Source of the DNA: Zancudomyces culisetae HAW-14-8
Lineage: Eukaryota > Fungi > Kickxellomycota
DNA length: 64,000 nucleotides
Reading direction: 5' to 3'
NCBI GenBank assembly: GCA_052426225.1
Contig: JBNJNM010000008.1
Coordinates: 62,001 to 126,000, forward strand
The stretch's first letter is position 1. The number at the start of each line of letters is the position of its first letter. Both the position numbers and the translations under genes were made by a program. Below the pieces are notes generated by a model. The model was not told the DNA's origin. It saw only the letters and a list, made by a program, of their open reading frames with translations, and ran no database searches. This document shows, piece by piece, positions 15,643 to 59,414 of this stretch.

Positions 15643-18600
15643 AATGGGTTATACTTTAGATTAATCAAAGTGAAAAGCGACCACTATCAAATTATGATGT
15701 GCAAGTGATCAATGAATTTAGTGAAAGATGTAACTCTTTTTTCAACTAATAGTAACTGCTATATTTAATTGGTTGTGTATTAAAGGAAGGCGGTGCTTTT
15801 GATTGATGTAAAATTGATTAATAGGTATTGATAAATCGATTAATAAATAATTTAAAGCTAAGATCACAAACATCTTCATACACTGCTGAGTACTACTGAT
15901 AGATGGGCAGTAGGCAATTGTTGTTTTAAATTCGCTATTAAAGTATATTTTGCAAAATATTTACGGATTTTAGCTTGGAAAAATTGAAGTAAAACGATTT
16001 TTCAAAGTTTTAAAAAACAAAAGCACTACTGGTATAATTCACAATCGATCTATCAAATAAACACTACAAAAAAACAACACTACAAAATATCTACCTGAAA
16101 ATCACCCTTATACCACTCTATAAACTTTGTACCCACCATATTCCGATTGAAAGTATCATAGAAACAAATAAAACTGTTGTAAATCATAACCCCATCACAC
16201 ATTGTAACTCGTTTCAGGTTATAAAAAGCATTAACAGAACATTTATTACTGCTACATTTATTTTTAATATGTAAACCAAAACTCAACTTTCACCAGAGCC
16301 AGAAATGTATCAGCGCACAAGATTACAAAGGGCAACCCGATAAGCAAAAGAAAAATTAGTAAAAGTAAGTTGGCTGATTATTATTGTTTCAAAAAGTATT
16401 GGCAAGTTAAAAATAATATAACTTTACAGAGAATATTCAGGTGCTCACATATAATATACAATCCGATGTGAAACCAAAGAATTACATCAAATCCAGAAGT
16501 TAAAGCGAATAACCTCGTAATATTCTCAACTTTTTATGCTTTCTAATCCTCACAACACCCTTTCCAAACGTCTCGTTAATAGATGAAATAATTACCCATA
16601 CAGAAAAAACTACATTGAATCATTTTTTCAATATAAATGTCAGGTATGGACTTTATCACCAGTTAATTTTATAGACACTTGAGTACTGAGTCCCATTTAA
16701 ATTGCAAATCCTTGTAAAACCAGCACCAGCAACAATAGATACTTTTTATTTTTCATTTTACGTAATTAAACCCGAGAAATTAATCACATGTACATTAATA
16801 TTATTCAAAGTATAAATAGTGCAACCCATCAGTGAATTAACCATGTATTCTCATCTATACCAGATGATATGGCATTTGGTTAAAACTAATCCAAGTAAAT
16901 ACGGATTTTTAATAATATTAACATAATACTGATAAATATTCTGTGTAAATATTGAAATAAGAACAGGCAAATGTTAAGAACTAGATAACATTGATGTATA
17001 CAACATAATACAAGAAATTGGTAAAGAATTTGGCGAGCACTTGCACTTATTATCGAAATTTTGGAATTTGATGTCAAACTAAATCCATTCTAATCAAATT
17101 AAAAAAGTCTAATTTATTGAATTAAATAAACAAGGTATGGTGAAATATGTATTCTATTCATCATTTTTGTGTAGATATATACCTAAAAAGTATAAAACTT
17201 GTAAAAACAACTCTTTAAAAAACTCAAAGCGTTTATTTAATAGCTAATAGTTTGAGGTGCTCTATATAAGCAGATATTAATGAGATGAAAAGAAACAAAC
17301 TCAGAAAAAATAAAACAGATTATAAAAACCCATTCGGTATTTCATTCTAGAAATAATTAAGAAAAACTAATGTGTAATGAAGATAAACACAATTAACAGC
17401 CATTTATACTTTGCATTCATAAACTCTTGAGTATTAGCTAAACGATCTAAAAAAAAAGAAAACCATATCATTTAATAACCCCTACAAACGAGAAGCATCA
17501 AGGCTATTCCACAAACAACCCGCTGATCAAACATAATCATCCCTGACTTTATAGTCGATAATTTGCCTATTCTTGGTACCTAAATCTCAAAATTTAAAGT
17601 AGCTGTCACAAAATAAACCTAACTACAATTCTTTAATTGACAATCCCAGGAGTTGATGCAATAGATGGATTCGCATCTACAACCTCCTCAGCACCAACCA
17701 CACCCACTCCTGTCTCAATTTTGCGTCAATTCTTTTGTATTGGATTGTCTTGAAGTACCAATACTGCCCACTTTCAACAAATTTAGCGCTATACATTGTG
17801 TTCCCTATCAACCTATACGCCATGGTAGATTTTTTGGTTCATTTGCTTGGTTGGGTTTGATTATATACATACGAAGTTATTGAATTCAGAATTTATTGAC
17901 TTGAAATAATACACAATCATTATATAGTACAATAATATGTTTAGTTTAATGAAATGTAAGCTTATTTATGATTGATTGATCGGCTAGAACTATGACCCAC
18001 TCGATCCCCACCTATACCTAGCTCAAGTAATAGTAAAAAAACAACAGAGAATCAGGTGATATCGGTTAAAGTTTAAATTTCCTCTATTTAGCTAGGTTAT
18101 TTAATTTCTAAAAAATTATACAGATATCTTTGGTTGTATATATCATTTAGTGCAAAAACTCTAAAATTAAATTTTCATTATTGGTTTAATTTTTTTTTAT
18201 TGATATAGAAAAAATTATATATTAAAAAGAGAGTATCTAATAAGGAATTATTGGTCTATAATAAAGATTGATAACATAGTTGTGTTTGGATGTTTGCAAA
18301 TTAATATTATGACCATTTCATTCAACTAAACATATTATATAGTATTTTCAGAATACCATTTTTTGGGAAATGTAATATAAGACTTGCAGATTAAAAAGCA
18401 AGAATGTTATAACATTGAGCAGGGCACTTCAACGCTATTTCCTAAACTCATACTTAGACCAGGAGTAGCATTAACGCATTGTTAAAGAAACTGCATGGTG
18501 TGACACAGTCAATTCGAGATTTTTAGAGGTGGGTATGTTGAATTACCCAAAGAATTTCAAGCCAGGTCTACATTCAACTCAATGAGTATCTATGTAATCT

Positions 18601-19240: not shown

Positions 19241-19810
19241 TTACCAGTAGCTATCGTAGTATGCACCATAGAATTTATAGGGATTGAACCCGTACCAACG
19301 GTCATCGGTTTCGCTTCCTGAATTGATTTTGTATCCTGGAGAATTAATAATTTGGGCAGGACTGTCTTGAGCTGAGACGGGTTTGTCGGCTGGAGCACCG
19401 CCCTCTTCGTCTGCGCGCTTGCGGTAGTATTTTCCGTAGTATCCGCTGTAGTATGGGTAACGGTATCCGTAATATCCTCCATAGTATGGGTAACCGTAGT
19501 ACCCCCACCAACGATCATCGGTTTCATCTACTGCATCACCATCTTCTGGAGCATCTGCAGACTGAACTAGTGCTGTATCATCTGCTGGAGCAGCTTCTTC
19601 CTCTTCATCAGCACGCTTTCGGTATGGTGGTATAGCGAAACGTCTATTAAAAGCAGGGCGAGCAGGAGAAGCAAATCTTCCAAGATCCTGAACCTGTTCC
19701 ATTGGTGGTTGCATGGGTCCGACATTTTCTCTTGGTCTTGGAGCGTATGCAGCATTTACTGATACTGTGGCAACTGCGACGGTGAGGAGTGCGAGTGTTG
19801 ACTTTACCAT
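19241..19810 (-). CDS. Secreted multi-peptide precursor (Kex2-processed repeat protein, KEP-like) with Tyr/Gly/Trp-rich cores, 189 aa
   Basis: Signal peptide, then two repeats of Y-RKR|ADEE..AP AD..(acidic spacer)..ETDDR|W-core. The cores are WWGYYGYPYYGGYYGYRYPYYSGYYGKYY and WYGFNPYKFYGAYYDSYW. Confidence 0.85.
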   Translation of the reverse strand: MVKSTLALLTVAVATVSVNAAYAPRPRENVGPMQPPMEQVQDLGRFASPARPAFNRRFAIPPYRKRADEEEEAAPADDTALVQSADAPEDGDAVDETDDRWWGYYGYPYYGGYYGYRYPYYSGYYGKYYRKRADEEGGAPADKPVSAQDSPAQIINSPGYKINSGSETDDRWYGFNPYKFYGAYYDSYW

Positions 19811-21322
19811 TTTTGATATTTAGTTTATAATGAGAGTTGTATGTAGCTGATGAACAAATGCCAAATTGTATTGCTAATACTAATGGTGATTTTAATGCTA
19901 ATTGTAGTTCTAATAATTATTCCTTGTTTGTTGTACTACTTGAAAAATTTTCTACAGATGATCTTTTTTTTTAATGATATTTTGAATCTTTTATACTTTA
20001 TCTTTTCTCGATCTGACTTGTAATATATTTTTGTTTTCTAGTAAAGAGACTCAAGTTATTATTTTTTTTTAGAGACATTATAAGTGTTCTAATTATAGAA
20101 ACGTAAAAAACAACCTGTCATTTAATAACACCAAGTTGGATCCAAATATACTATTTTTTGGTATATTTTAGCAATTTAAGCAACAAACTATTACTAATTT
20201 TGGTACTTTGAAACCTTTTCACTATCCAACCATGATAGCTAGATATTAGTTTTTTCAGATTAACCACCAGTGGCTTTTATTTTTATTTTTTGGTATATGA
20301 ACATTTTATTCTGTGCTAATTCAATAATCATAACTGATATAGAATTAAATTTATAACCATTTTCTAATTTTGCTGATTGTTTTTAGTATTGGTTTGTCAT
20401 TATTTTAAGGCTTGGGCATCTACTTAGGTAAATTTAATATTTTTAGAAGCACTTTCCAAATCAAAATGATGGTATGCTCATCAAAGCCATTAGAAAAAGA
20501 TTTAAAACTGAAAAAAACCCCTTCCTACGAACACTCATAATACACCACAATTTATTTTGTCTAGATACATTATGAATAAGCATCTATTTTTTGGACAGCA
20601 CATATTCAACGTTTAGCCAAGAACCTAAAATGACCAAAGTAAGGGTACTACTTCATTAAATCATCAATAATACAAAGAGAATTAGAGATTTTAAATAAAC
20701 AAGTAGAAAATTCAAGTTGCTGATCCCTTAGGGGTGAAAAGTTTTTATATTCAGATTATACAAAAGCAGCTCACTAAAAATAAATTTTCATAATTACAAT
20801 TTATAAAGAAAATACGGTTGTTGTAGTGTACAATTATATCTATATCGGTTACACTCTTTGTTTATAAAAATATACTTTTTAGTAGACGTTGTTAGAAACG
20901 TTTATTTTTCAGCCTAAAATGTCGTACCAGACCTCCATTGCAGGGTATATAGCTTTATATTTACCAGAAACCCTCGAAATACCTACCTACGAGCTTTTAT
21001 ATTCTTGTTTACGCACTCCTTTTGTGGTCCATATGAACATGTGATTACAATCTATAAGCATTTACATTTATGATTATACAATCAAGAACCATTTTTACAA
21101 TTTTTAAACTAATAAAAAAAAGTTTTGGATGTTTCATACTAGGTTATTTGGTGCGGCTATTTTGAACTTTTCTTTCTCATTGTGTTCTATAGATATAATA
21201 TAAATACCACAAAATCAAAATATCAGATTCAATAGTTTGCAAAAAAAAAACCCTCTCTGTGTTCCTCAAGGTACTCCAATCCCACCAGGTTTGTTAAATG
21301 GCACTAAAAAAATTATTGAATA

Positions 21323-25569: not shown

Positions 25570-26445
25570 ATGATCAAGTTGTTAGAATTTGTGGCATGTT
25601 GCACTTTGCTTTGCCTTTTGACTACTTGCTCACTGGGCGTGCGTTTGGACGAACCCTTTTATGAAAAGAGAAGATTGGAAAAGCGAGTAATCGGAGGGGT
25701 ATCGGCATCTGATAAAAACTACAAATTCATTTCAGCAATAACTACAGCGAATCGGACATCAGTCAAGTGTACGGCTTCTCTTATCGCACCAAATGCAATA
25801 TTGACTGCGGGTAGCTGTATACGATCTCTTGAAAATGATGTAGGCTCAGATTCTAGTAAGATTTTAGTGAGGTTTGGGGTATCAGATCCAACCTCGTCAT
25901 CAAAAGAGAACTACCCAATAGAGTCCATCAACTACCATCCCGAAATTCAATTCTCAACATTCACTAACGACATTGCAGTAATTGTTTTGAAAACATGTGT
26001 GCCAAAATCTGTAGCAACTCCTGTGCACGTAAATACCGACGATTTTCAAGAGTTTCTTGCATACAAACTAGCAGGATTTGGTATTTCTAGCACCGATGGG
26101 ACCTATCCAAACACGCTTCAACAATTAACTCTAGTACAGGGCAGCAGAAGATTATGTGAGATTTTTTTCAATTCCAAGGATGTTAACAACAAAATATTTT
26201 GTGCAGCCCAATATAAAGCTAGCTCAATTTGTACAGGAGATGCTGGTGCACCATTAACGACCGACGACTTTCAAAGCCTTGTTGCACTAGCCAATGCACA
26301 GCTAACTACCAAGGAAAATGTATGCAACCAAGACAACTCTGTCTCTATTTTTACTATTTTGTCACCACATTGGAAAAACTTTATTTCGACCTATGCACCG
26401 TGTACTGGATCTTCCTGTGATTATTCTTCATTATGTCCAAACTAG
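25570..26445 (+). CDS. Secreted trypsin-like (S1A) serine protease homolog, predicted catalytically inactive, 291 aa
   Basis: Signal peptide and propeptide ending EKR|VIGG. LTAGSC replaces LTAAHC (His lost), NDIAVIVL keeps the Asp, and CTGDAGAP replaces CxGDSGGP (Ser lost). Confidence 0.85.
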   Translation: MIKLLEFVACCTLLCLLTTCSLGVRLDEPFYEKRRLEKRVIGGVSASDKNYKFISAITTANRTSVKCTASLIAPNAILTAGSCIRSLENDVGSDSSKILVRFGVSDPTSSSKENYPIESINYHPEIQFSTFTNDIAVIVLKTCVPKSVATPVHVNTDDFQEFLAYKLAGFGISSTDGTYPNTLQQLTLVQGSRRLCEIFFNSKDVNNKIFCAAQYKASSICTGDAGAPLTTDDFQSLVALANAQLTTKENVCNQDNSVSIFTILSPHWKNFISTYAPCTGSSCDYSSLCPN

Positions 26446-47978: not shown

Positions 47979-50900
47979 TTAGTTCAAAGTTAAAGCTGCT
48001 GGTTGCTGGGTAGCAGGGGGTAATGAAGTGGTAGAGTGAGTAAAAACCAGATGTAGCCAAGCATAGAGGGCATTCAACAACCCATCAGTAAACAACAGTG
48101 AGTTGTCAGGGCTGTACATGTTGTGGGAGGCTAGGAACTGTTCGAGCGAAGAGCGGGGCAGTGGGTGATAACAGATGGAGGAAAAGTAGTAAGGGCTGAA
48201 GGAAGGTGCGTTGGCAGCAAGGGCGGGGATGTATGGTGCATAGCGGCGGTATAGGTCGTCGAAAAAGAGGTACCAGCAGAGCCGGAGGGGATGTGGGTGG
48301 GTTTTTGGAGGTGGGGCTAATGGGGGCTGATCAGGTTGCTCAGGTTGGTTGGGTTGGTTGGGTTGGTTTGGTACCATAGTTGGTATTGCGGTTGGCATCG
48401 CGATCGGCATCTGGGTTGGGTATGCTGATGAACTTAAATTGGTGTTTGAAGTTGGAATTTGGTCAAGATTTGGATCTGGCATAGAGATAAAAGTGGGATT
48501 TTGGGCAGAGGAATTATGAACCAAAGAATCAGAAGTAGGAATTCCAGAGATACCCAAAAGCTCATTGTTGGGAGAAAGAAGAGAACTAGGATCAAAATGC
48601 ACAACTGAAGGGTCACGAGGGTGTAGCGAGGGGCGAACAAGATCAAGGCGAATGTACAGAGCCTTGAGGTCGCTGTAGTGGTCGTGGACAAGGTTCTTTA
48701 GATAAGAATTGGATTCAAGTGAGACGAGAGCCATCAGTTCGTTGTATGTAGGCAGAGCATCAAGAGCAAAAGTAGATGCAAGTGGTAAAGATAAAGATGG
48801 TTTTTTCGCGGGGTAGAGGAGGGGTGTAGAAGAGAGTGCGGATGATGGTGGAGAAATGGCATTATTGAGATCAACAGACTCAGCAACAGCAGTATACCAC
48901 GAAACATGTGTCGCAGCATGGCGCAAAGAATTTGTGGGTGCAAGGCCAGGATGTGGTGCAAAGATGGTGCGGAGAAATGCATATGATGATGCGTTAAGTT
49001 TGCTGTAGTGTAGGGAAGAAAGGTATTTTCGACGGCGGTCAAAGCTCTCGAGTACACGTGGGAAGGTAGCAGCAATTGCGTCCGAGTTTGCAGCCAACAG
49101 GTAGTACAGGTTGTCGGTTAGTTGGAGGTCGGAGGTCAAGCCCAGGAGTTTGGCTTCGAGACGTGCCGCTAGTGGAGCAGTCCATGAAGCCCACAAATCG
49201 GTTGGATTAATGCGGATTTTGTCATGTGCACGTGCTGGTGGCGAGTCGGAATTCTCGAGAAGCCGCAGCGCACCAAACAACGCAAATGCGCTCTTTTTCT
49301 CTTGTAGTTCTGCAAAGGATGCGTCGGTTGCATTATCTGCATTGAACCGCTTGGTCTGTAGCATGGCGACGAGGACGGGGTCGATTGCTGAACTGTTGCC
49401 AGCAGCTGGTTTGGACCGAGAAAGTGGACCGCGAGGTATTTTTGCATAAACAAGATTATCATTCGCTTTAGATTTGGATTTGGATTTACTAAAGAACGAT
49501 GCAAAGGTATTATTACTTTGACCAGACTGTTGTTGTTGTTGTTGTTGCTGTTCATCAGACGAGTCCTTGGGGATTTCAGAAATAAAAGAGCTCAGATTAG
49601 ATACAGCTGTCCTTGATACTATTTGATTTTCGGCACTATAGACAACGACATGTGCAGCCAAAAGAGCCAGTCGCACTTGGAAACCAGCACTGTCGGCCGG
49701 CTGCAGATTGTGGCGAACAATGGAAAGTTTTGCCGAAACAACCAGTTTTTTGGAGGGGCTTTCGGTGGCAAACGGGAGAGAAATTGTGGGTTGAAGCTCG
49801 AGAGAGCGTATAGCAAGGCGGAGTTGGCGCCTGCGGATGATTTCGTGGCAGGAGTTCTGAGCTACAAACACACGCCAGGCAGTAACTGAGTAAATACGGA
49901 TGACGTGCTGAGGTGCTTCGTCATAGATGAAATACAGACAGAACGGAAAACTGGTCCATGAAGCCTTGCCGAACCACGATTGGATGCGGTACGTTGTTTG
50001 TTTGTACGGGTTTGCTGCGATAACTTGGTTTTGGATATTGAGAGCTTCTTGAATTTTTAAATCGTTTGAAGATTCAAAAATCACACCAAATACTTGCTTT
50101 TCTGACAATTGTTGTTGTTCAGGATTATTTTCAAAGAGAGCGAGTGGAGGCTTAAAATACATATCAGGACCATTATAGTTGTTTATAATCTGAGTTTGAA
50201 GGTCACGAACCAAAAACGGGTCGTTTAGGAGTGGTGTGGAAATTGAACTAGTCTGCTGTAGATTAATATTATTATTGTTGTTGTTGTTGTTGTTATTGTT
50301 ATTACTATTATCCTGCTGCAAGTCTGGCAGATTCCAACCAAAAAGATTATCGTTGTCTTGGCGTATCGATGTAGGATTGACGCAGTGCTCGGCGCGGCTG
50401 ACAAGGTAGTCATCAATAACTGCCTGTGAGTATTGTTCGTAGCCTATTGCCTGCATAATCAGTACATTTTCAACGTGTCGTTCGGCAGAATATCCACTGA
50501 ACGACGGTAGAGTTGGTGTACGCCCATTATCACGATCAGAGGTGCTGGGGTGGTTGTACAGATACCCTGAAACTGGTAGCGAATAGAAAGCATCAGCTGT
50601 GAGAACTGGCAGCCGCATATCGCGTGATGCAAGCAGGATGGCCGACCAGGTATCTTGCCAGATGCGCTGAGCGGCGAGTAGTTGTAGATTTGAAGAAAAT
50701 GCCGATGTGTCGTTAAGGATACCGGGAGAAAACGAGAAACAGTGTGATGGAGCAGTTGAAGAGAGTGGGATGGTGGCGTAGTGTGGTTCTATTGGGTCTT
50801 GTTCACTAGTAGTAATATCTGTAGTGTTGGTAGTATTAGTAGTGGTGTTGGTAATGGTGATGATCGAATGTGCTTGAGAGATTGAGCCAACAGCAATGAC

Positions 50901-53869
50901 AATGATAGTGAAGGAGCAGAGAACATAGACAAACAACATAAAACAAAGAATGCTAAAGAAAGCATAGTTTCCAGAAAACAAAGGTGTTGAAGACGAAACA
51001 ATATTGAACAGATAGTTTTTGTTGACGTTGTTGACAATGGAAAACAACACAAGTGCAAACACACTGATGATTGCCAAACATACATGCATAATGAAGTCGG
51101 CAGCATTCATCGACGAGTCAAAGTACGGCTTGTTGGAAATACACTTCTTCAGCGCATACAATATACACAGCATGAATGCGACTTGGCGAAACGTATCAAT
51201 AGATTGTACAACAATTGCATTTAACCCACCCAGTTGGGTTGTGGCAGCTGCGGCTGCAGCCATGTCGGAGAATTTGAAAAATGCAACACGAGGTTTGCGC
51301 AAGCACGTATATGACGAAAACAACGAGCCTAGCAGAGCCAGCAAGAATTTGAAGGCACAAGATGCCGCAAACTCGGCAGCAAAGTCTGGATACGTGTTTT
51401 GGTAAACAAAAGCCAGTGGGTTACGGTTTGCATACAGCAACCGCTCATATACCTGAATAGCCAACAACGACTTGAGTTTGCCAACATGCTTGCCCACTTT
51501 GTGGTCAACACCATCGAGCTGGAAATTGTGTTCCTCTAGCACAGCCAGTAATGCCTTGCCTGCAGGAGTCGACGCCACCACGGCATAACAGTGAGTAGAT
51601 GTCAGTAGTTGGTTAATAGTCGGCATGTTTTGGTGAGCCAGGCTGGCAACATACAGTGGGAACGCAATGCCGTAGAACGCCAGCACGGCAGCCGCAAGAC
51701 CGAGCAGTCCACCTGTGGCGTTGACGCCTTCAGAGTCAAAGTAATTGTAGCATGTAGAAGCAGGTAGATCGGAAGTGGTATATTCAGATACTGGCCATAG
51801 CCACGAGTTCCACAGTATCACATTAAGCGCATACTTGATTGTAGGCAGATACAGCAGATACAGAGCCACAAAGAGTGCCTTGCGTATATTCATATGCCAA
51901 TACGAAGTCTTCATGAACCGTTTGGTGAGTAAGCTTAGTCGGGTTGGCGCAGTAAGCGTAAATGTGGTGCGTGTAATGCTTTCAGCAACCGATGGAACTG
52001 TGCGGATTCGATGGTCAAGAAGATTTGTGGTTTGTGTTGTGGCAGTGGTGATGCAGCTAACAGCCGTACTTTTGGTTTTCGTCTGAGCCGATTCGGTAGT
52101 TGTGCGGAGACACTCCAAAAATTCATCAGAGTTTAGCAGGTCCTTGGTGGAATCAAACCAGTGAGCAAACGGGGTAAACCGGCTAGCTTTACGCTTAACA
52201 TTGACCGACTCCAGCAGTTTCTCCTCAGTATCACCATCAAGCGAATCCATTGTGTCAGCAAAGTAGTACTTGTGCTCTTCATTATAAAAGCTAGGATAAC
52301 TGATACTAAGTAACACCCACGACGCCAGCAATAACAACGCAAGAGCCGCGTAGACATAGAAAGCAATGGCTGATGCAGTTTGCGAAACGTGTGCAAACAA
52401 ATCGCCAAACATCAGCCCAATGGTTGTGGTTGGATATAACAACCCTCGGAGTGGCACAAACGGGCCGTAAAAGGAAATGCTTGCATCTCTAGCAAAAAAA
52501 TAATGGTGGATCAATCCGCCAACTAATATTGCTATAATCTGGTTCATATCTACCAACCGGAACACAAATGGCATTGTGCGGTCGCACGCCGGACCGAAAT
52601 GCACCTGCCACCCATCACTGCCTCTTGCAATATGATCCACATAGAAGTGTGCAATGTACTTGGTATATGTCGCTGCAACCGTTGCTTTCACTGTTTCTGC
52701 TGTTATCTTGCTGGCTTTTGCTAGCAATGCGACAAATGTGTATGGTGATGCTAAAAATAATGTCTTTTCAACCGACCAGTTGTCATCAATTTGGTTGGTG
52801 GGTGTAAAAGCATGCATCAGTGCATCCGTACGTAAATATGGAATGTGGCTAAACGGTGCAAACATTCCCTCCTTTTCCATCCCCACTGTGTTTGCTGTTT
52901 CAACATTAACTTTGAACTGTTGTAATATTAATTGTTTGGCTGACTGCTTTGTTCCCAACCTATTCTTTTTTCCTTTCTCCTTTCCTTTACTCCTTTCTCT
53001 TTTCTTTTCTCTTTCCTTTTCTTTTCCATTATCTTTGTTGGCTAGCCCATTGGTATCTGCGCTTCCATATACTGCCAGTGCCTCTGTATCAAATACTGCT
53101 TCACTTGCCCGCGCAAATCGCCGTACCTTAACACTATAACTATTCGCCGCAAGCTCTGTCAATACCACATCAACATCAGGCTGACTAACTCGTGCCGCAT
53201 CTGGTTGAATGTCTTCTAAACTCAACCCCAGATTCTGTGCCGTTGTTTGTTCCGCAGTCACTGCTTCCACTGTCGTTGTTGCTGTTGAAGAGTTTCGATT
53301 GCTTCGTTTGAATAACTGCAAAAATAGTTTTGGATCAAGACTAAATGCTCCACTGCTGCTGCGCTCCGAAAAGTACCATGAACCCGGTACCAATGGCACT
53401 AACATAATTTGTCCACGTATTGGCTTGACCTTTTTACGTGCTTTTTTCACTAGATACGTTATTAGTGCGATTAATGATGTGAATAAGAGCGCTAAAACTA
53501 GCTTGAAATTACTTTTTTTCTTTTCTTTTTCTTTTTCCTTTGCCTTTCCTCCTCCTGCCCCTCCACCTCCCCCTCCACCACCACCACCACCTCCTCCTCC
53601 ACTGTAGTTGTTAATATTACTGTTGTTGGGGTTGTTGTTATAGTTTGGGTTGTTGCTATTGAAATTACCTGTGTTGGTATTGTTCATGTTATTATGGTTT
53701 TGTTGATTAAAATTGCTATTATTATTATTATTATTCATGTTATTATTGTAGTTGGCATTTCCTCCGGCATTCGAAAGCATCGTTCCAATTACCGGCACCA
53801 CTGCTGGTGCTGCACCCAATATTTTACCAAACAAATTATTGTTTTTCTTGTCATCATTGTTACTATTAA

Positions 53870-53906
<37 letters not shown>

Positions 53907-56900
53907 ATTAGTGTTGGTGTTGGTGTTGGTGTTGTTGAGACTTTGTGTAGCAACACTAGGCTCCTCAGGCACCATCGCCATATTCACCTGTACATTTGTG
54001 TTATTTTGTCCATTACCACTATTACTAGGTTGAGTATTTTGACGTACTGCCGCAACTGGTACAGCTAGTGTCGATGTTTGTCGTTGTTCTCTATTCTTAT
54101 TAGCAACCACAAGTACTTGTTGATCACCACCACCACTACCACTACCACTATCACTATTTTTGTTATTTTCTTGTAACCTGTTGTACTGTGGAAACCTCTT
54201 TTCACCAAATGATGATGATGATGCTGATGATTGAAGTTTACCGAAATTACTTGGTTTTTTTTCAACTCCCAAATCATCAACCAAATCAACTTCTCCTGTT
54301 GCTTTGATCTGCTTAAACCGCTCTTGCATACCTTTAAACGCCTCTACCTCTGTCCCGCTTCTTCCATCCAACATCTTGACTTTTTCATTATTTTCTATTT
54401 CTCTTTCTCTTTCTGATTTATCGCTGGTGCGCTTGAATGGGTTCCTAAACACTCTTTTAAATTTATTAAAAAAGTTATCCCTACCCGTTGCAAACCATCC
54501 CTTGTGATCTCCACCCTTTCGTTTAAGTTTTTGGTTTTCCCCTTTTCCTTTTCCATTTTCTTTTGCATCTACATTCTCCTTCCCACCTTCTATCTCATCT
54601 TCGACTTCAACATCCTTGTTCTTGTTTTTTAAAGTATGGTTTTTATAATACTTGGTTTTAATGTTGACATTATTTTCATTATCTCCCAGTTTTGCTATAA
54701 ATTCATCACTTGTATCTGCAGGTTGCTTCTGGTTATTGAACAATATTTTTACCACTTCTTCTTTACTGCCAAGATTACTATTAATATTGCTATAACTATC
54801 ATCAGTACCATTACCATTACCATCAACTTTTCTGTTATTCATTCCATTCCCCTTCCTCTTGTCTCTGTTTTTGTCCATTGCCTTTACTCCTGATTGTGCT
54901 GATAAACCACTATATACCCTCTCACCAGATCCAAGTAGCCGTGAACTGGAAGTATTGTTATCCTCATTGCGATAAATATTATTGCTTGTCTTGGAATTTG
55001 AACCCCGCTGGTACCTGTTTCCAACACCAATTATAGCCACCTGTTTGGCTTTTGAAGCCTTGGAACTAACACTCTTTGAATCATTCTGACTTTCATTTTG
55101 ACTTTCACTTTCACTTTCACCTTCACCATTACTACGTTCTCTGTATTCATACTTTTTGGTACTAACATTCTCAACTGATGTCGGTGCTGAACGCTGTTGT
55201 AGTTTTTGTGGAATTTGTGGAAGTGTCTTTTTTCCAACTACAAATGACATTTTTTTATTACCACCACCACCACTACCACTATTACCACTACTGATTTTAC
55301 TGTTATTATCGTTATTGTTGGTCATTAAAATTGGATTTACAGAGTTTCTGGTACCTGAAATACCGGGTCCTGTTTGGATCGATGAGAGTAAGTTAATATG
55401 GTTGTTAGTTACAAATGGTGGTTTTTCATTTTGACCTTTTGATGTGTTGTTTACTGATTGAATTGCCAATTTATTAGTCACAAGTTTATGAGCACTATTG
55501 TATTCCAAATGTCCTTTTTCATAACCTCCATTATCATTATCATTACCATTACTATCATCTATACCACTCGCTGTTGTTGTAGAACTCTTTGCTATAAGCG
55601 AACTAGTGTACGTTGTAGAGTTATGTGATGGTATATTTGGTATTTTGGATTTTTGCTTTTGCTTTTGTGTTTGTTTTTGTCCTTCCTCGTACTCTGAATT
55701 TGTATTTCCCCTATCATTACCACGATAGTAATCACTAACACCATCACTAACACCACCACCGCTTTTAAGAACCATTTTTGTTGATGATGGGGATCTGGTT
55801 TTCTCTGTTGTCTTTGGCGAATTGAATGGTGGTGTCATGACTTGCTTGTCTAAATACCCCGATACATTTTTTTTATTTTGAATTGTTGTTGATTTGTATT
55901 CAACAAAAGGATTCTCGTTTTGATTCTCCGTTACTAGTACGGTATTCACAATCGGATTAGCTTCAGTCTTAATATACTCCTTTTCATTGACATTTTCAGT
56001 GTTGTGGCTTGAAATATCTGATTGAGACGTCGGTGATAATGGTAATAGTTGGTTAACAACTACTTTTGCTTTAGCTTTAAGTTTAGATTTAGGCTTAGGC
56101 TTAGGTTTAGGCTCTGGAGTATCTGTTGGTATAGAATCTGGTTGTGCTGCCGATTTTATCCGTTCCTTTTGTTTTTCCTTGGCTTTCAATTTCTGCTTGA
56201 TAGTCACATCAATTGGTTGGTTCCACCATTTCCCACTTTCACTGCTATTATTCGAGACGTAGGACGTGTTTTTCTGCTCTCCCTCTATACCAACCTCTTT
56301 TATCTCTATCTTGCTATTGTATGGCTTTGGGCCAAACGAATCGTCTTGCTTCGGATTAACTGGAACATCAAAGCCTGTGCCCAAACTCAGGTTCTCAAAG
56401 TTATCTATTTTTGACCGAATCAGGTTGTTGCTGCTGCTGGTTTGTTCATCAATACTACTATGTTGGTCCAGATTTGTGCGGATATCGCTTGGTTTATATG
56501 AATATCGACTAGGATGTGTCATTGTGCTCAGTAGCGACCTGTTGTCAATGTGCATATTTACCTTGCTGTCATCATTGCTCTTGTAGCTGTCGGTGTGACC
56601 ATCTACCTGCCCAACGCCGTCAATTCCCCGATTGGATGCACCTGGTTCTGTGTGCCTTGTCCTTTTTGTCCTTTCCATATCTTTTAACTCTTGGATTTTT
56701 TTGATTGGTGGTTTGGGTAGTGCCTTTTTTGGTCGAACTTCAGCTTCAACCCTATCCTTATTAACTCCGCCATTTATTTCTCCAATCTCTTTTACCTCCT
56801 CGACTTTGTTTTCTATTTCAGCATTGCTCTTGTCTTTTTTTTCTACCAAATTTGTGTTGTAAACATTTATGTTTTTTACCCTTTCATTTCTCCCAGCTAT

Positions 56901-59414
56901 TGCTCCTATTTTGTCTGGTACAGATGGATACACTCTAAACTCAATACTCTCACCATTTGCCTCTGTTTGGTGCTTTTCCTGTTCCTGTTCCTGTTCTTGT
57001 TTCTGCTCCTCTTTCTGCTTCTGATTCCAAGTCTGCCTCTGGTTCTGCTCCTGCTGTGCTTGCTGCGTTATTATCGACTCAATATACTCAACTTGTGACC
57101 GTCGTTGAAGCACCTTACGCCAATCACCTCGACTCTTACCCGATAATTTATAGATACTATCATTTCTCCCACTTTCCTCCTCCTTCTCGACCACTACCTC
57201 CTCCCCCAATTTTGCATCTCTTGCTTCCTTTACCACTTTTGCCGGTCCAAACGGCGGCCGCTGGAAAAGCTTTCGATTTGCATAGTGTTTGTAATCTTGA
57301 ACTACATTGAGTTCGCCACTTACTGCTGGCGACTCCAACATTTTTGCCGTACTATAGTTGTTCAACCCATCCGCTTTTATATCTACTTGTGAAATCTCCG
57401 AACTTGCATTCGTATCTGTGACTGTCATTGTATCTGCATTCTTGTATATTTCCACGTACTCTTTGTGTTTATCCAACCATGCTTCAACTTTGCTATATCC
57501 TCTTGGTCTATTTGCTCCACCAACCTGTTGACTTTCTACTTCTATCCCATCTCGCTCATCTCGCTCATCCTGGTCGCCTCCCATAGACCCAGCAGCTCCC
57601 TCTTGCTCCACATCTACCGCCAAGACAGCTTCACCCACCTTGTTTTTCTCTATCCTCTGATTAATAGGTAATGATGATTTTGCTTTGCCTTTCAACTGCC
57701 GCTCCGTTCCCTTTAAACTCTCACCACTCGCTGTCTTGTCCCTGGATACTACGCTATTCAGTTCTCCTCCACTGCTATTTTTAAGTTGCGTCTCCAGCCG
57801 CTCAACTATCCTTTCAACATGACACTCTTCAATTTTCCCTGTCGATCTCCGTTCCTTCTTTTTCTTCGTGCCCCCATCTTCACCTGACTTGGGCGTTATT
57901 TTCTCCAGAAAACTCTGCTCAAGCCTAGACCTGCTTTTACTAAGACTTTTCTGTCCCTTTGATATCTCGGATTTTCTACTTTCCTTTGTTGGTGCCTCGT
58001 TAGCCCAACTACTATTTCTATCTCCACAATAGTCATTACTACCACTAAAACTGCTATTCCCATCTCGGCTCTTACCTCTAGACGATAAAACTGGTGGAAA
58101 TTTCACATTTCCAATCCCATAATTGCTTGTGCTCGATTTCGATATGCTTTTGCTATCAATACTCGTGCGTTTTCCTCTCACCACGCACTCCTCATTTTTT
58201 TTATTCATATCCTTGATACTCTGTTGTCTCTGCATTTTCTCCTTTATTTCAGCAACGTCAATTTCTCTAGTTTTTCCAACAGTTTTGTTTGCTATCTCTA
58301 TCTCATCCTTAGCAGTGTTCAGTGATTGTGCATGCTGTTCTAATATATTTTTCACCATATCTCCGCCAATACTACTCCTCGAATAATCCACACTTCCTAT
58401 TGATGCATTTTTCCCTTGTACCCTCCCTGCTCTCCCAGATTTGCGCTCAGTGTTAGGTTCACTTGTTGTCACTACTCTTTTGGACTTTGCGTCCTTGAGT
58501 TCTATATCTCTATCAGGTCGACCTGTGCTTTTTCTGCGCAACGCTGTGCCTCTTTCACTATCAGTATCAATACCAAGTTGATTCCCTTTGCTTTCTTCGG
58601 GCATTCCAGCGGTTCTCAAAATATCTTTACCCGAGCTGTAGCCGCCATTATTGCTACCATTGCTATTTAAATCACCTCCTTTAATTTGTGCCCTATGTTG
58701 AAGATATCCTGTTACTTTTACTTCTTCACACGCTTGAGGTGGCTCACTTTTATTTCCTTCAGTCCCACCGAAAACCCCTAACCTCTCACCTAAACTCGTT
58801 TCGTCAAACGCCGTCTTGTATGATAACCGCTTCACAACATTCGACACGTCAGTTCTTCTATCTTTTACTCTTTCCAACACACTGCCACCCTCAATTTCTT
58901 TTGTCTTTTCCACTGTGCCTCCACTATACCTGTTACTGGACATATCAAGATTACTCTCGGTCGAATAGTACATACTCTTGCCCGATGTTCCTTCAGTCTT
59001 TCCCATCCTACTACTATCATTTTCCGAGTCTTTACTCATCATCGAACTGGTACTTTGCACACTACTCCTATTTCGCTTAGTCGACCGTTTTGGGATCTTC
59101 TTTCCTATAAGCTCAGTGATATTGATGTTTTGGTTGTGAAACTTCGAATCGCTTTGACTGTACTGCTTGCTCTCCAACCCACCACTCTTTCTACCGGTTA
59201 TTCGCTCCAGTGCAAACATGTCGATATCGTTTGCCGAACTATTTTCTTTTTTGTTTTGCGCCTTTGCCGCCCTCATATATTCTGCATATAATGCATCTTT
59301 TATATCCTCCACCACACTGTCTACGTCCAGCACACTATCGCTCCGCTCAGAACTGCTCCTCCTACTCCTATATTTGGTTTTACTATATCTGCGTTGTTTT
59401 ACTTCTTTTTCCAT
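47979..59414 (-). CDS. Giant single-exon 3811-aa protein: about 2000-aa low-complexity N-terminal region, multi-pass membrane region and globular-looking C-terminal region; function unknown
   Basis: 11.4-kb uninterrupted ORF. No signal peptide. Poly-N/G/Q tracts. First TM is FKLVLALLFTSLIALITYLV, followed by multiple further hydrophobic segments. Motifs KPYFDSSMN, QRIWQDTW, SAERHVEN, GPDMYF, WYLFFDDLYRR. Confidence 0.85.

Follow-up and report, generated by a model that had tools for sequence, protein, structure and literature searches.

A telomere-proximal gene family of the mosquito-gut fungus Zancudomyces culisetae encoding candidate precursors of tyrosine-rich peptides

The window analysed here is a 64,000-nucleotide stretch of the genome of Zancudomyces culisetae HAW-14-8, a mosquito-gut fungus of the Harpellales (contig JBNJNM010000008.1, positions 62,001 to 126,000), and window positions are used for numbering unless another locus is named. 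The minus strand carries at 19244-19810 a gene for a 189-residue protein, hereafter the query, which belongs to a family of 30 intact members. The explanation that we tentatively prefer is that these proteins are secreted precursors that would be matured by two proteases into self-associating Tyr/Gly peptides of an extracellular material. It draws on two junction motifs that recur across the family, on the retention of both junctions in a duplicated module of the query, and on the composition and copy number of the Tyr-rich tails. We infer all steps after translation from the sequence.

Architecture of the query and its paralogs

The query is divided into the following segments, where a slash within a motif marks a predicted or possible cleavage position.

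19244-19810 (-): complete single-exon coding sequence (CDS) of 189 amino acids (aa), an ATG-to-stop open reading frame (ORF) with its stop codon at 19241-19243; divergent two-module family member
19748-19810 (-): predicted signal peptide, aa 1-21, made up of MVK and a 15-residue hydrophobic core, then VNA/A or NAA/Y
19676-19747 (-): Pro/Arg-rich pro segment, aa 22-45, ending QDLGR at the basic residue R45
19622-19675 (-): core 1, aa 46-63, Pro/Arg/Phe-rich, with the RPAFNxRF motif and a net charge of +3
19613-19621 (-): first RKR, residues 64-66, predicted kexin site with the cut after KR and before ADEE
19511-19612 (-): acidic spacer 1, aa 67-100, net charge -14, ending ETDDR; AlphaFold predicted local distance difference test (pLDDT) below 50
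19424-19510 (-): core 2, aa 101-129, W-initiated and Tyr/Gly-rich, with 15 Tyr among 29 residues, 7 Gly and 2 Trp
19415-19423 (-): second RKR, the start of the duplicated module, present only in the query among the paralogs
19298-19414 (-): spacer 2, aa 133-171, net charge -5, ending ETDDR
19244-19297 (-): core 3, aa 172-189, an 18-residue aromatic C-terminal peptide with Trp at both ends

This succession of signal, pro segment, QDLGR, core, RKR, spacer, ETDDR and core had been described in an initial annotation, and all its segments lie where they had been placed in the intact ORF. The same annotation had counted the 15 Tyr of core 2, had observed that RKR-ADEE and ETDDR-W are repeated exactly, and had guessed at a gut fungus as the source, all of which agrees with the present analysis. 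The signal peptide was called by rule; its Kyte-Doolittle 9-residue means reach 2.7 and the segment is conserved in all paralogs. No membrane segment is predicted in the query besides this N-terminal endoplasmic reticulum signal, as is required by the published pipeline for Kex2-processed repeat proteins (KEPs). Disorder is predicted for the mature protein. With the alignment of the paralogs as input, AlphaFold2 gave a mean pLDDT of 47.7 and a predicted template modelling score (pTM) of 0.11, the sole helix being formed by residues 4-17, and aa 22-63 have pLDDT values of 53-62 without secondary structure. Core 1 contains PRPR and RP motifs. An older short-read assembly holds the gene as model AX774_g439, also of 189 aa and 98% identical, with the differences R45K, Y109C and K127R. 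R45 is otherwise invariant in a 12-sequence alignment, and is replaced by Gly in paralog L015.

A six-frame search of the genome with the query protein returned 34 matches, which correspond to 31 loci. The intact members comprise 29 ORFs of 131-152 aa together with the 189-aa query; one locus, L031, is degenerate, and a separate fragment is found in L032. The layout common to the intact members begins with the signal peptide and a Pro/Arg-rich segment with RPAFNxRF, continues with Tyr-RKR, ADEEEE, an acidic spacer of variable sequence and length and TDDR, and ends in a W-initiated Tyr/Gly C-terminal tail. Only in the query is this tail followed by a second RKR-spacer-DDR-W-core module, all other paralogs having a single one. 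Since the query is the sole two-module copy, the normal form in the family is a protein with a single kexin site and a single tail rather than a repeat polyprotein. The Kex2-type polyprotein of the initial annotation thus holds as regards the RKR sites and the presence of a kexin gene, whereas repetition is confined to two modules in one member, short of the three repeats expected of a KEP.

The two junctions are well conserved among the 30 intact members. The first reads RKR/ADEE in 26 of them, RKR/AEEE in one, QKR/ADEE in one and HKS in two (L029 and L030), which places a dibasic site before A-(D or E)-E-E in 28 of the 30. The second reads TDDR/WW in 27, EDDR/WL in two and TNDR/FW in one, and DDR/W is accordingly present in 29 of the 30. 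The initial annotation had proposed a genome-wide search for paralogs of the form RKR-ADEE...DDR-W and had let its reading depend on the conservation of the RKR and DDR boundaries in homologs; about 30 such paralogs were found, with the conservation just given. Because the same junctions recur in ~30 paralogs, the repeated boundaries in the query are more than chance.

The tails are 26-41 residues long and consist of 49-55% Tyr and 12-34% Gly, with 2-4 Trp, 2-3 Pro, 0-2 basic and no acidic residues. Their charge is 0 to +2 at pH 7 and they are not amphipathic. Tail length varies in YG units, and the program TRF reports a period-6 array. A genome search with the tail alone gave matches only at the family loci. 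In the divergent duplicate pair L029 and L030, HKS replaces RKR, the spacer is poly-Glu and the tail, W...YW, has 10 residues with 2 Tyr; core 1, in contrast to the tails, keeps its conserved sequence in this pair as well.

Within the query, RKRADEE and ETDDRW each occur twice and are exact at the protein level. The two copies of RKRADEE differ by four synonymous and no non-synonymous changes, and those of ETDDRW by one and none, while the spacers between the junction copies have diverged and contain indels. Judged from these differences, the module duplication is old and the junction residues have been retained. The age of the duplication, taken with the synonymous-only change at the junctions, is at present the strongest evidence for regarding the latter as functional sites. 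Selection across the family was assessed by Nei-Gojobori counts over nine representative paralogs, expressed as the ratio of the proportions of non-synonymous and synonymous differences (pN/pS). The ratio is lowest for RKRADEEEE (0.22), intermediate for core 1 (0.34), ETDDRWW (0.36), the signal peptide (0.39) and the pro segment (0.44), and highest for the spacer (0.67). Paralog comparison of the coding sequence gives 0.2-0.5. Values below 1 throughout indicate that the genes are under protein-level constraint, with the first junction constrained most. Copies of the main clade are almost identical and show no diversification.

Predicted maturation and alternative explanations

The preferred explanation proceeds as follows. 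Signal peptidase would remove aa 1-21, and the single kexin, acting in the Golgi, would cut after each RKR, thereby freeing the Pro/Arg-rich N-terminal peptide and, in the query, separating the two modules. Each module would consist of an acidic spacer and an aromatic peptide, the spacer keeping the Tyr-rich and nearly uncharged peptide soluble until it is clipped. A second, monobasic-specific protease would cut DDR/W; the candidates are a trypsin-type enzyme, from the fungus or from the host gut, and a yapsin. The released peptides would be 18-41 residues long, start with Trp, end with Tyr or Trp and contain ~50% Tyr. They would self-associate, and secreted tyrosinases may cross-link them into a holdfast glue or a wall or spore matrix, with subtelomeric amplification supplying gene dosage and tail-length variation. 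The tolerance of tail length, the absence of charge and the ~30 near-identical copies favour such a composition-driven, self-associating material over a receptor ligand or the core of a peptide that is ribosomally synthesized and then modified post-translationally (RiPP).

The genome encodes one kexin (C15:1061245), identified by the Pfam domains Peptidase_S8 (E = 4e-46) and P_proprotein (E = 3e-19). Kex2 requires Arg in the P1 position; at P2 it favours Lys or Arg and tolerates few other residues, Asp not among them, and at P3 it disfavours Asp (PMC8528282). Thus, T-D-D-R/W is not a kexin site and a non-kexin protease is needed, in line with the second processing specificity that the initial annotation had deduced for ETDDR. 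Nine tyrosinase matches were found in the genome, and the three that were read begin with a hydrophobic, signal-like N-terminus. Trypsin-domain matches number at least 86 in the 27-Mb genome. Such numbers show the trypsin-like proteases to be very greatly expanded; several of the domains lie inside ORFs of 750-2400 aa.

Several observations weigh against the preferred explanation. The loss of RKR and the tail of only 10 residues with 2 Tyr in L029 and L030 mean that the Tyr-rich tail is not universal in the family. The most sequence-conserved part outside the signal peptide is the Pro/Arg-rich N-terminal segment, which may be the real functional product, with a function of its own. No enzyme could be assigned to the predicted DDR/W cut, and acidic residues at P2-P3 slow ordinary trypsins. 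Four of the 31 family loci lie within 8 kb of a trypsin gene where 1.4-2.3 would be expected, a difference that is not significant. Co-location with trypsin genes was therefore rejected as support for a DDR/W protease, the random expectation being 4.5-7.3% and two of the four loci being mutual duplicates. No tyrosinase is clustered with the family; two of the nine matches (C10 and C23) are on the same contig arm as family members, but the distances of 23 and 43 kb do not amount to a cluster and this co-location was rejected as well. The tailoring genes sought in the initial annotation are thus represented by the tyrosinases, none of them clustered with the family, and not by DUF3328: UstYa/DUF3328 (PF11807) gave no match in the 27-Mb genome, although the control genomes gave no match either, so that the sensitivity of this search is unproven.

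A further point against the preferred explanation is that an exhaustive profile hidden Markov model (HMM) search of 1.84 billion representative proteins found no orthologs outside the species; it returned only the Z. culisetae family and one environmental protein, P0010, which is discussed below. A word-indexed protein search returned Z. culisetae proteins only. The Pfam search with the query gave no usable match, the best hit of the PDB sequence search (E = 0.09, to RNase T1) is noise, and the best score in the ESM Atlas (0.76) is under the level at which a match exceeds a lead. As far as these searches reach, the family is restricted to Zancudomyces. Should it prove silent or unprocessed, it would simply be a lineage-specific low-complexity subtelomeric family.

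The rival that survives best, although we consider it unlikely, is that the secreted protein remains uncut at DDR/W, and perhaps at RKR too, and acts as an intact, disordered wall or surface protein of three blocks (basic at the head, acidic in the middle, aromatic and sticky at the tail). It might bind chitin or cuticle through Tyr/Trp stacking, the junctions being structural or sorting motifs. The block architecture and the predicted disorder are real, aromatic residues commonly mediate carbohydrate binding as a matter of general knowledge, and both the lack of an identified protease for DDR/W and the missing RKR of L029 and L030 fit an uncut protein. However, the RKR-ADEE...ETDDR-W module added in the query keeps both junctions by synonymous-only change, which is hard to explain without a junction-specific function. 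Moreover, the setting of RKR in a secretory protein, with an acidic stretch after it, is canonical for kexin substrates, and the genome encodes a kexin.

Rather more doubtful is a role of the Tyr/Gly peptides, of the Pro/Arg-rich N-terminal peptide, or of both, as antimicrobial or competition peptides against gut bacteria or fungi, with the amplification reflecting an arms race. By analogy, the composition resembles that of the Gly/Tyr-rich NLP and CNC peptides of nematodes, which are reportedly induced by fungal infection, and parallels can be drawn to the YGGY-type NLP and caenacin peptides and, for the N-terminal segment with its PRPR and RP motifs and net charge of +3, to insect proline-rich antimicrobial peptides. 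The fungus inhabits a microbe-rich gut, and the neighbourhood is full of small secreted-protein genes. Nonetheless, the tails are essentially uncharged at pH 7 and not amphipathic, and their near-neutrality argues against a classical cationic antimicrobial peptide, an option of the initial annotation that is also weakened by the lack of diversification. The main-clade copies are near-identical with pN/pS below 1 everywhere, tail length varies by simple YG slippage, and no homology to a known antimicrobial peptide family was found by Pfam, profile HMM, ESM Atlas or PDB searches.

A specific form of the preferred explanation, in which the family furnishes the Harpellales holdfast glue as an adhesive doubly gated by a protease clip and a fall in pH, is decidedly unlikely on present grounds and is offered as speculation. 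Mosquito larvae have an alkaline midgut (pH > 10) and a neutral hindgut. The calculated tail charge changes from ~0 at pH 7 to about -10 to -16 at pH 10.5, a switch that would suit passage from the alkaline midgut to the neutral hindgut. The tail would be soluble while tethered to the polyacidic spacer and, as tyrosinate, at midgut pH above 10. A trypsin-type clip at DDR/W and the neutral hindgut pH would then let it collapse onto the cuticle, where secreted tyrosinases would cure it, and the ~30 subtelomeric copies would serve burst expression and provide length variants. Spores of Harpellales are reported to release glue at certain gut pH, and a novel attachment strategy is expected for them, with a fasciclin-domain protein proposed as one player (PMC5954228). 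Larvae of mosquitoes, black flies and midges carry Harpellales attached to their gut cuticle, and the family offers concrete candidates for the molecular basis of this attachment, with predicted peptides of defined N- and C-termini and ~30 copies placed in the telomere-to-telomere-resolved subtelomeres of a model species.

The least probable reading, and a very improbable one, is that of a dikaritin-like RiPP or signalling-peptide precursor whose Tyr cores would be cyclised or modified into bioactive molecules or pheromone-like ligands: the signal peptide and Kex2-flanked Tyr-rich cores recall the ustiloxin and asperipin precursors (PMC7329392), Tyr-rich KEP peptides of Rhizophagus have been flagged as possible cyclisation substrates (PMC6339444), and core 3 and the tails of L029 and L030, at 10-18 aa and with a Trp at either end, resemble discrete peptides, but UstYa/DUF3328 is without a match genome-wide (with the limit on sensitivity given above), no oxidase, methyltransferase or transporter adjoins the query gene, the cores are long (26-41 aa), variable in length and without exact repetition, and ~30 near-identical copies would be unusual for a RiPP or pheromone gene. 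The RiPP precursor suggested in the initial annotation fares poorly for the same reasons, the tails varying by (YG)n without exact short cores, and a Pfam search of the 10 longest other ORFs of the window found no oxidase or DUF3328 among them.

Genomic setting and neighbouring genes

The PacBio-HiFi assembly of Z. culisetae comprises 27.09 Mb in 25 contigs, the largest of 5,239,357 bp (PMC12611240). Within it, 25 of the 31 family loci lie at most 100 kb from a contig end, where at most 18% would be expected, and 20 of these 25 are oriented away from the telomere. Nineteen contig ends were read (L037-L052 and L063-L065). TTAGGG/CCCTAA arrays are present at 15 of them and absent at the start of C10, both ends of C16 and the end of C22. 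Contigs 8, 13, 21 and 23 carry telomere arrays at both ends and are apparently telomere-to-telomere. The query lies on contig 8, at 81 kb from its left telomere, and has the opposite orientation.

Subgroups of paralogs have flanks that are 92-100% identical by blastn across the whole 3.3-3.4 kb fetched, which indicates that these subgroups spread as blocks. Telomere-proximal copies and block duplication are the marks of a subtelomeric multigene family, and both are present here. The query has in common with its paralogs, by blastn, only the CDS, a leader of ~40-60 bp and a 257-bp remnant of a neighbouring gene. These and the other features placed around family members are as follows.

19811-19870 (-): 5' leader or core promoter of ~40-60 bp, with ~81-84% identity to the paralogs; blastn of oriented loci gives matches from oriented positions 1441-1460, with the ATG at 1501
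18338-18594 (unstranded): degenerate remnant, ~70% identity, of a convergent downstream small secreted-protein gene; blastn aligns L001 oriented 2717-2973 with 2530-2800 of L008, L009, L011 and others, and there is no long ORF here in the window
25570-26445 (+): secreted trypsin-domain protein of 291 aa (Pfam Trypsin, E = 5e-23), with the kexin-type activation junction EKR/VIGG
L060:1064-1969 (+) and L060:3061-3495 (-): block of a trypsin gene and an L029-type gene, with the duplicate locus L061; contigs 21 and 8 each carry a copy of the whole block

The convergent neighbour accompanies most subtelomeric paralogs on their downstream side and is seen intact at L057:1121-1513 (-), L058:1130-1519 (-) and L059:1086-1478 (-), where it encodes a secreted protein of 130-131 aa that contains a run of His and the pattern FSGYRFSG and has no Pfam match. 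Two further loci, L055:4946-5302 (+) and L058:7508-7864 (+), encode a secreted protein of 119 aa; its signal peptide (MVKSTLALLAAVV...) is near-identical to that of the Tyr-rich family, and its mature part resembles the FSGYRFSG neighbour family. This combination suggests a chimera that arose when subtelomeric families recombined or exchanged signal peptides. Small secreted-protein genes are in general plentiful in the subtelomeres.

The trypsin-domain protein at 25570-26445 is ~6 kb from the query and, with a His motif TAGSC and a Ser motif GDAGAP, is probably a pseudo-protease. L029 and L030 are located ~1.1-2 kb from a catalytically intact trypsin, in which the His, Asp and Ser motifs are kept, in tail-to-tail arrangement. 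Among the 10 longest other ORFs of the window, five have Pfam matches (the trypsin pseudo-enzyme, MOZ/SAS, Ufd2/U-box and thioredoxin) and five have none. A 3811-aa ORF occupies 47979-59414 (-), in a GC-richer part of the window.

Comparison with known systems

Mussel foot proteins mfp-3 and mfp-5 and the sandcastle-worm cements are secreted, very Tyr/Gly-rich and strongly cationic (Lys/Arg-rich) proteins with demonstrated modification to 3,4-dihydroxyphenylalanine (DOPA). The present family is like them in Tyr/Gly content, in secretion and in having a polyacidic partner, as in coacervate glues, and shares no homology with them. High Tyr is combined with high Lys/Arg in mfp-3 and mfp-5, whereas here 49-55% Tyr goes with 0-2 basic residues per tail, so the likeness to mussel foot proteins drawn in the initial annotation is compositional only. 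The nematode NLP and caenacin peptides, as well as animal neuropeptide-type polyproteins, resemble the family in that Gly/Tyr(/Trp)-rich peptides are released at basic sites. The nematode peptides are cationic, unlike the family tails, and no shared ancestry was found by profile HMM, Pfam, PDB or ESM Atlas searches.

The environmental protein P0010 matches the family profile with E = 6e-5 in the tail region only, and the match is compositional. P0010-P0023 (loci L053, L066 and L067; from JGI, MERC and Logan) are eukaryote-like environmental polyproteins with several units of the form RR or KR/W-core-G/KR and acidic spacers between them. The cores are Tyr/Gly/Trp-rich and end in Gly-KR, and some contain the family string YGYPYYG. 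In contrast to the family, their peptides are bounded by dibasic sites on both sides, often with the Gly-KR end that is an amidation signal. Since the similarity is limited to the low-complexity core, it represents a recurring design, or analogy, and not homology. From their sequences, P0010-P0023 appear to be an uncharacterised class of aromatic-peptide precursors.

The dikaritin precursors (ustiloxin UstA, asperipin-2a and phomopsin) likewise have a signal peptide and KR-bounded Tyr cores, and tyrosinases take part in such pathways. They differ in that their cores are near-identical exact repeats of 4-6 residues, while those of the query measure 18, 29 and 18 aa and are dissimilar and the family tails vary between 26 and 41 aa. 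Neither a gene cluster nor a DUF3328/UstYa match accompanies the family, and no DUF3328 gene was found near the precursor.

Fungal adhesins of the FLO, EPA and ALS types are subtelomeric, large, Ser/Thr-rich proteins with a glycosylphosphatidylinositol (GPI) anchor and folded binding domains. Telomere-proximal amplification, block duplication and length polymorphism of internal repeats are common to both groups, but the proteins described here have ~140 aa and no anchor signal or folded domain. Processing of Rep1 of Ustilago maydis gives 11 peptides, which assemble into amyloid fibrils at the surface (PMC3133707). It provides a functional precedent with kexin-derived peptides, as a pre-pro-protein cleaved along the secretory pathway to yield self-assembling peptides of a surface material. 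There is no sequence similarity between the two; Rep1 holds 11 repeats in one gene where the family has 1-2 modules per gene in ~30 genes, and the Rep1 peptides are amphipathic and not Tyr-rich.

KEPs are secreted precursors, as are the family members, and the peptide modules of the query are parted by KR sites followed by acidic residues. They are reportedly abundant in Zoopagomycota, and nine were counted in Z. culisetae by the KEP surveys (Le Marquer 2019, PMC6339444; Umemura 2020, PMC7329392). The KEP pipeline requires at least three fragments with one repeated motif (PMC6339444). Cleavage after KR or RR would divide the query into four fragments (RR 56-57, KR 65-66 and KR 131-132), where the pipeline asks for at least four; most paralogs have one KR, in some cases with one further RR or KR, and would give fewer fragments. 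At least three repeats are expected of a KEP, and the query has two modules and the other paralogs one. In addition, the cores are not near-identical as in KEPs and each module contains an extra monobasic site.

The normal form of the family is closer to the Kex2-processed pro-domain (K2PP) proteins and effectors, a recognised class (Outram et al. 2021, PMC8528282), than to a repeat polyprotein. K2PP proteins have a signal peptide and, within their N-terminal half, a disordered pro segment ending in KR, RR or LxxR; in the query this corresponds to aa 22-63 followed by RKR 64-66, a kexin is encoded, and the typical family members of 134-152 aa have the same layout. By its sequence, the family fits the K2PP definition and not the repeat requirement of KEPs. 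It departs from K2PP effectors in that the part after KR is not a folded effector but an acidic spacer and a 50%-Tyr low-complexity tail with the monobasic DDR/W, and in that conservation is highest in the 'pro' segment. The family stands apart from both K2PP effectors and KEPs through its monobasic junction within the protein, its extreme Tyr content and its amplification in subtelomeres. In combination, the kexin site, the polyacidic spacer that would confer solubility, the monobasic trigger site and the half-Tyr peptide would constitute an unusual variant of fungal pro-protein processing, a design that may be useful for bio-inspired adhesives.

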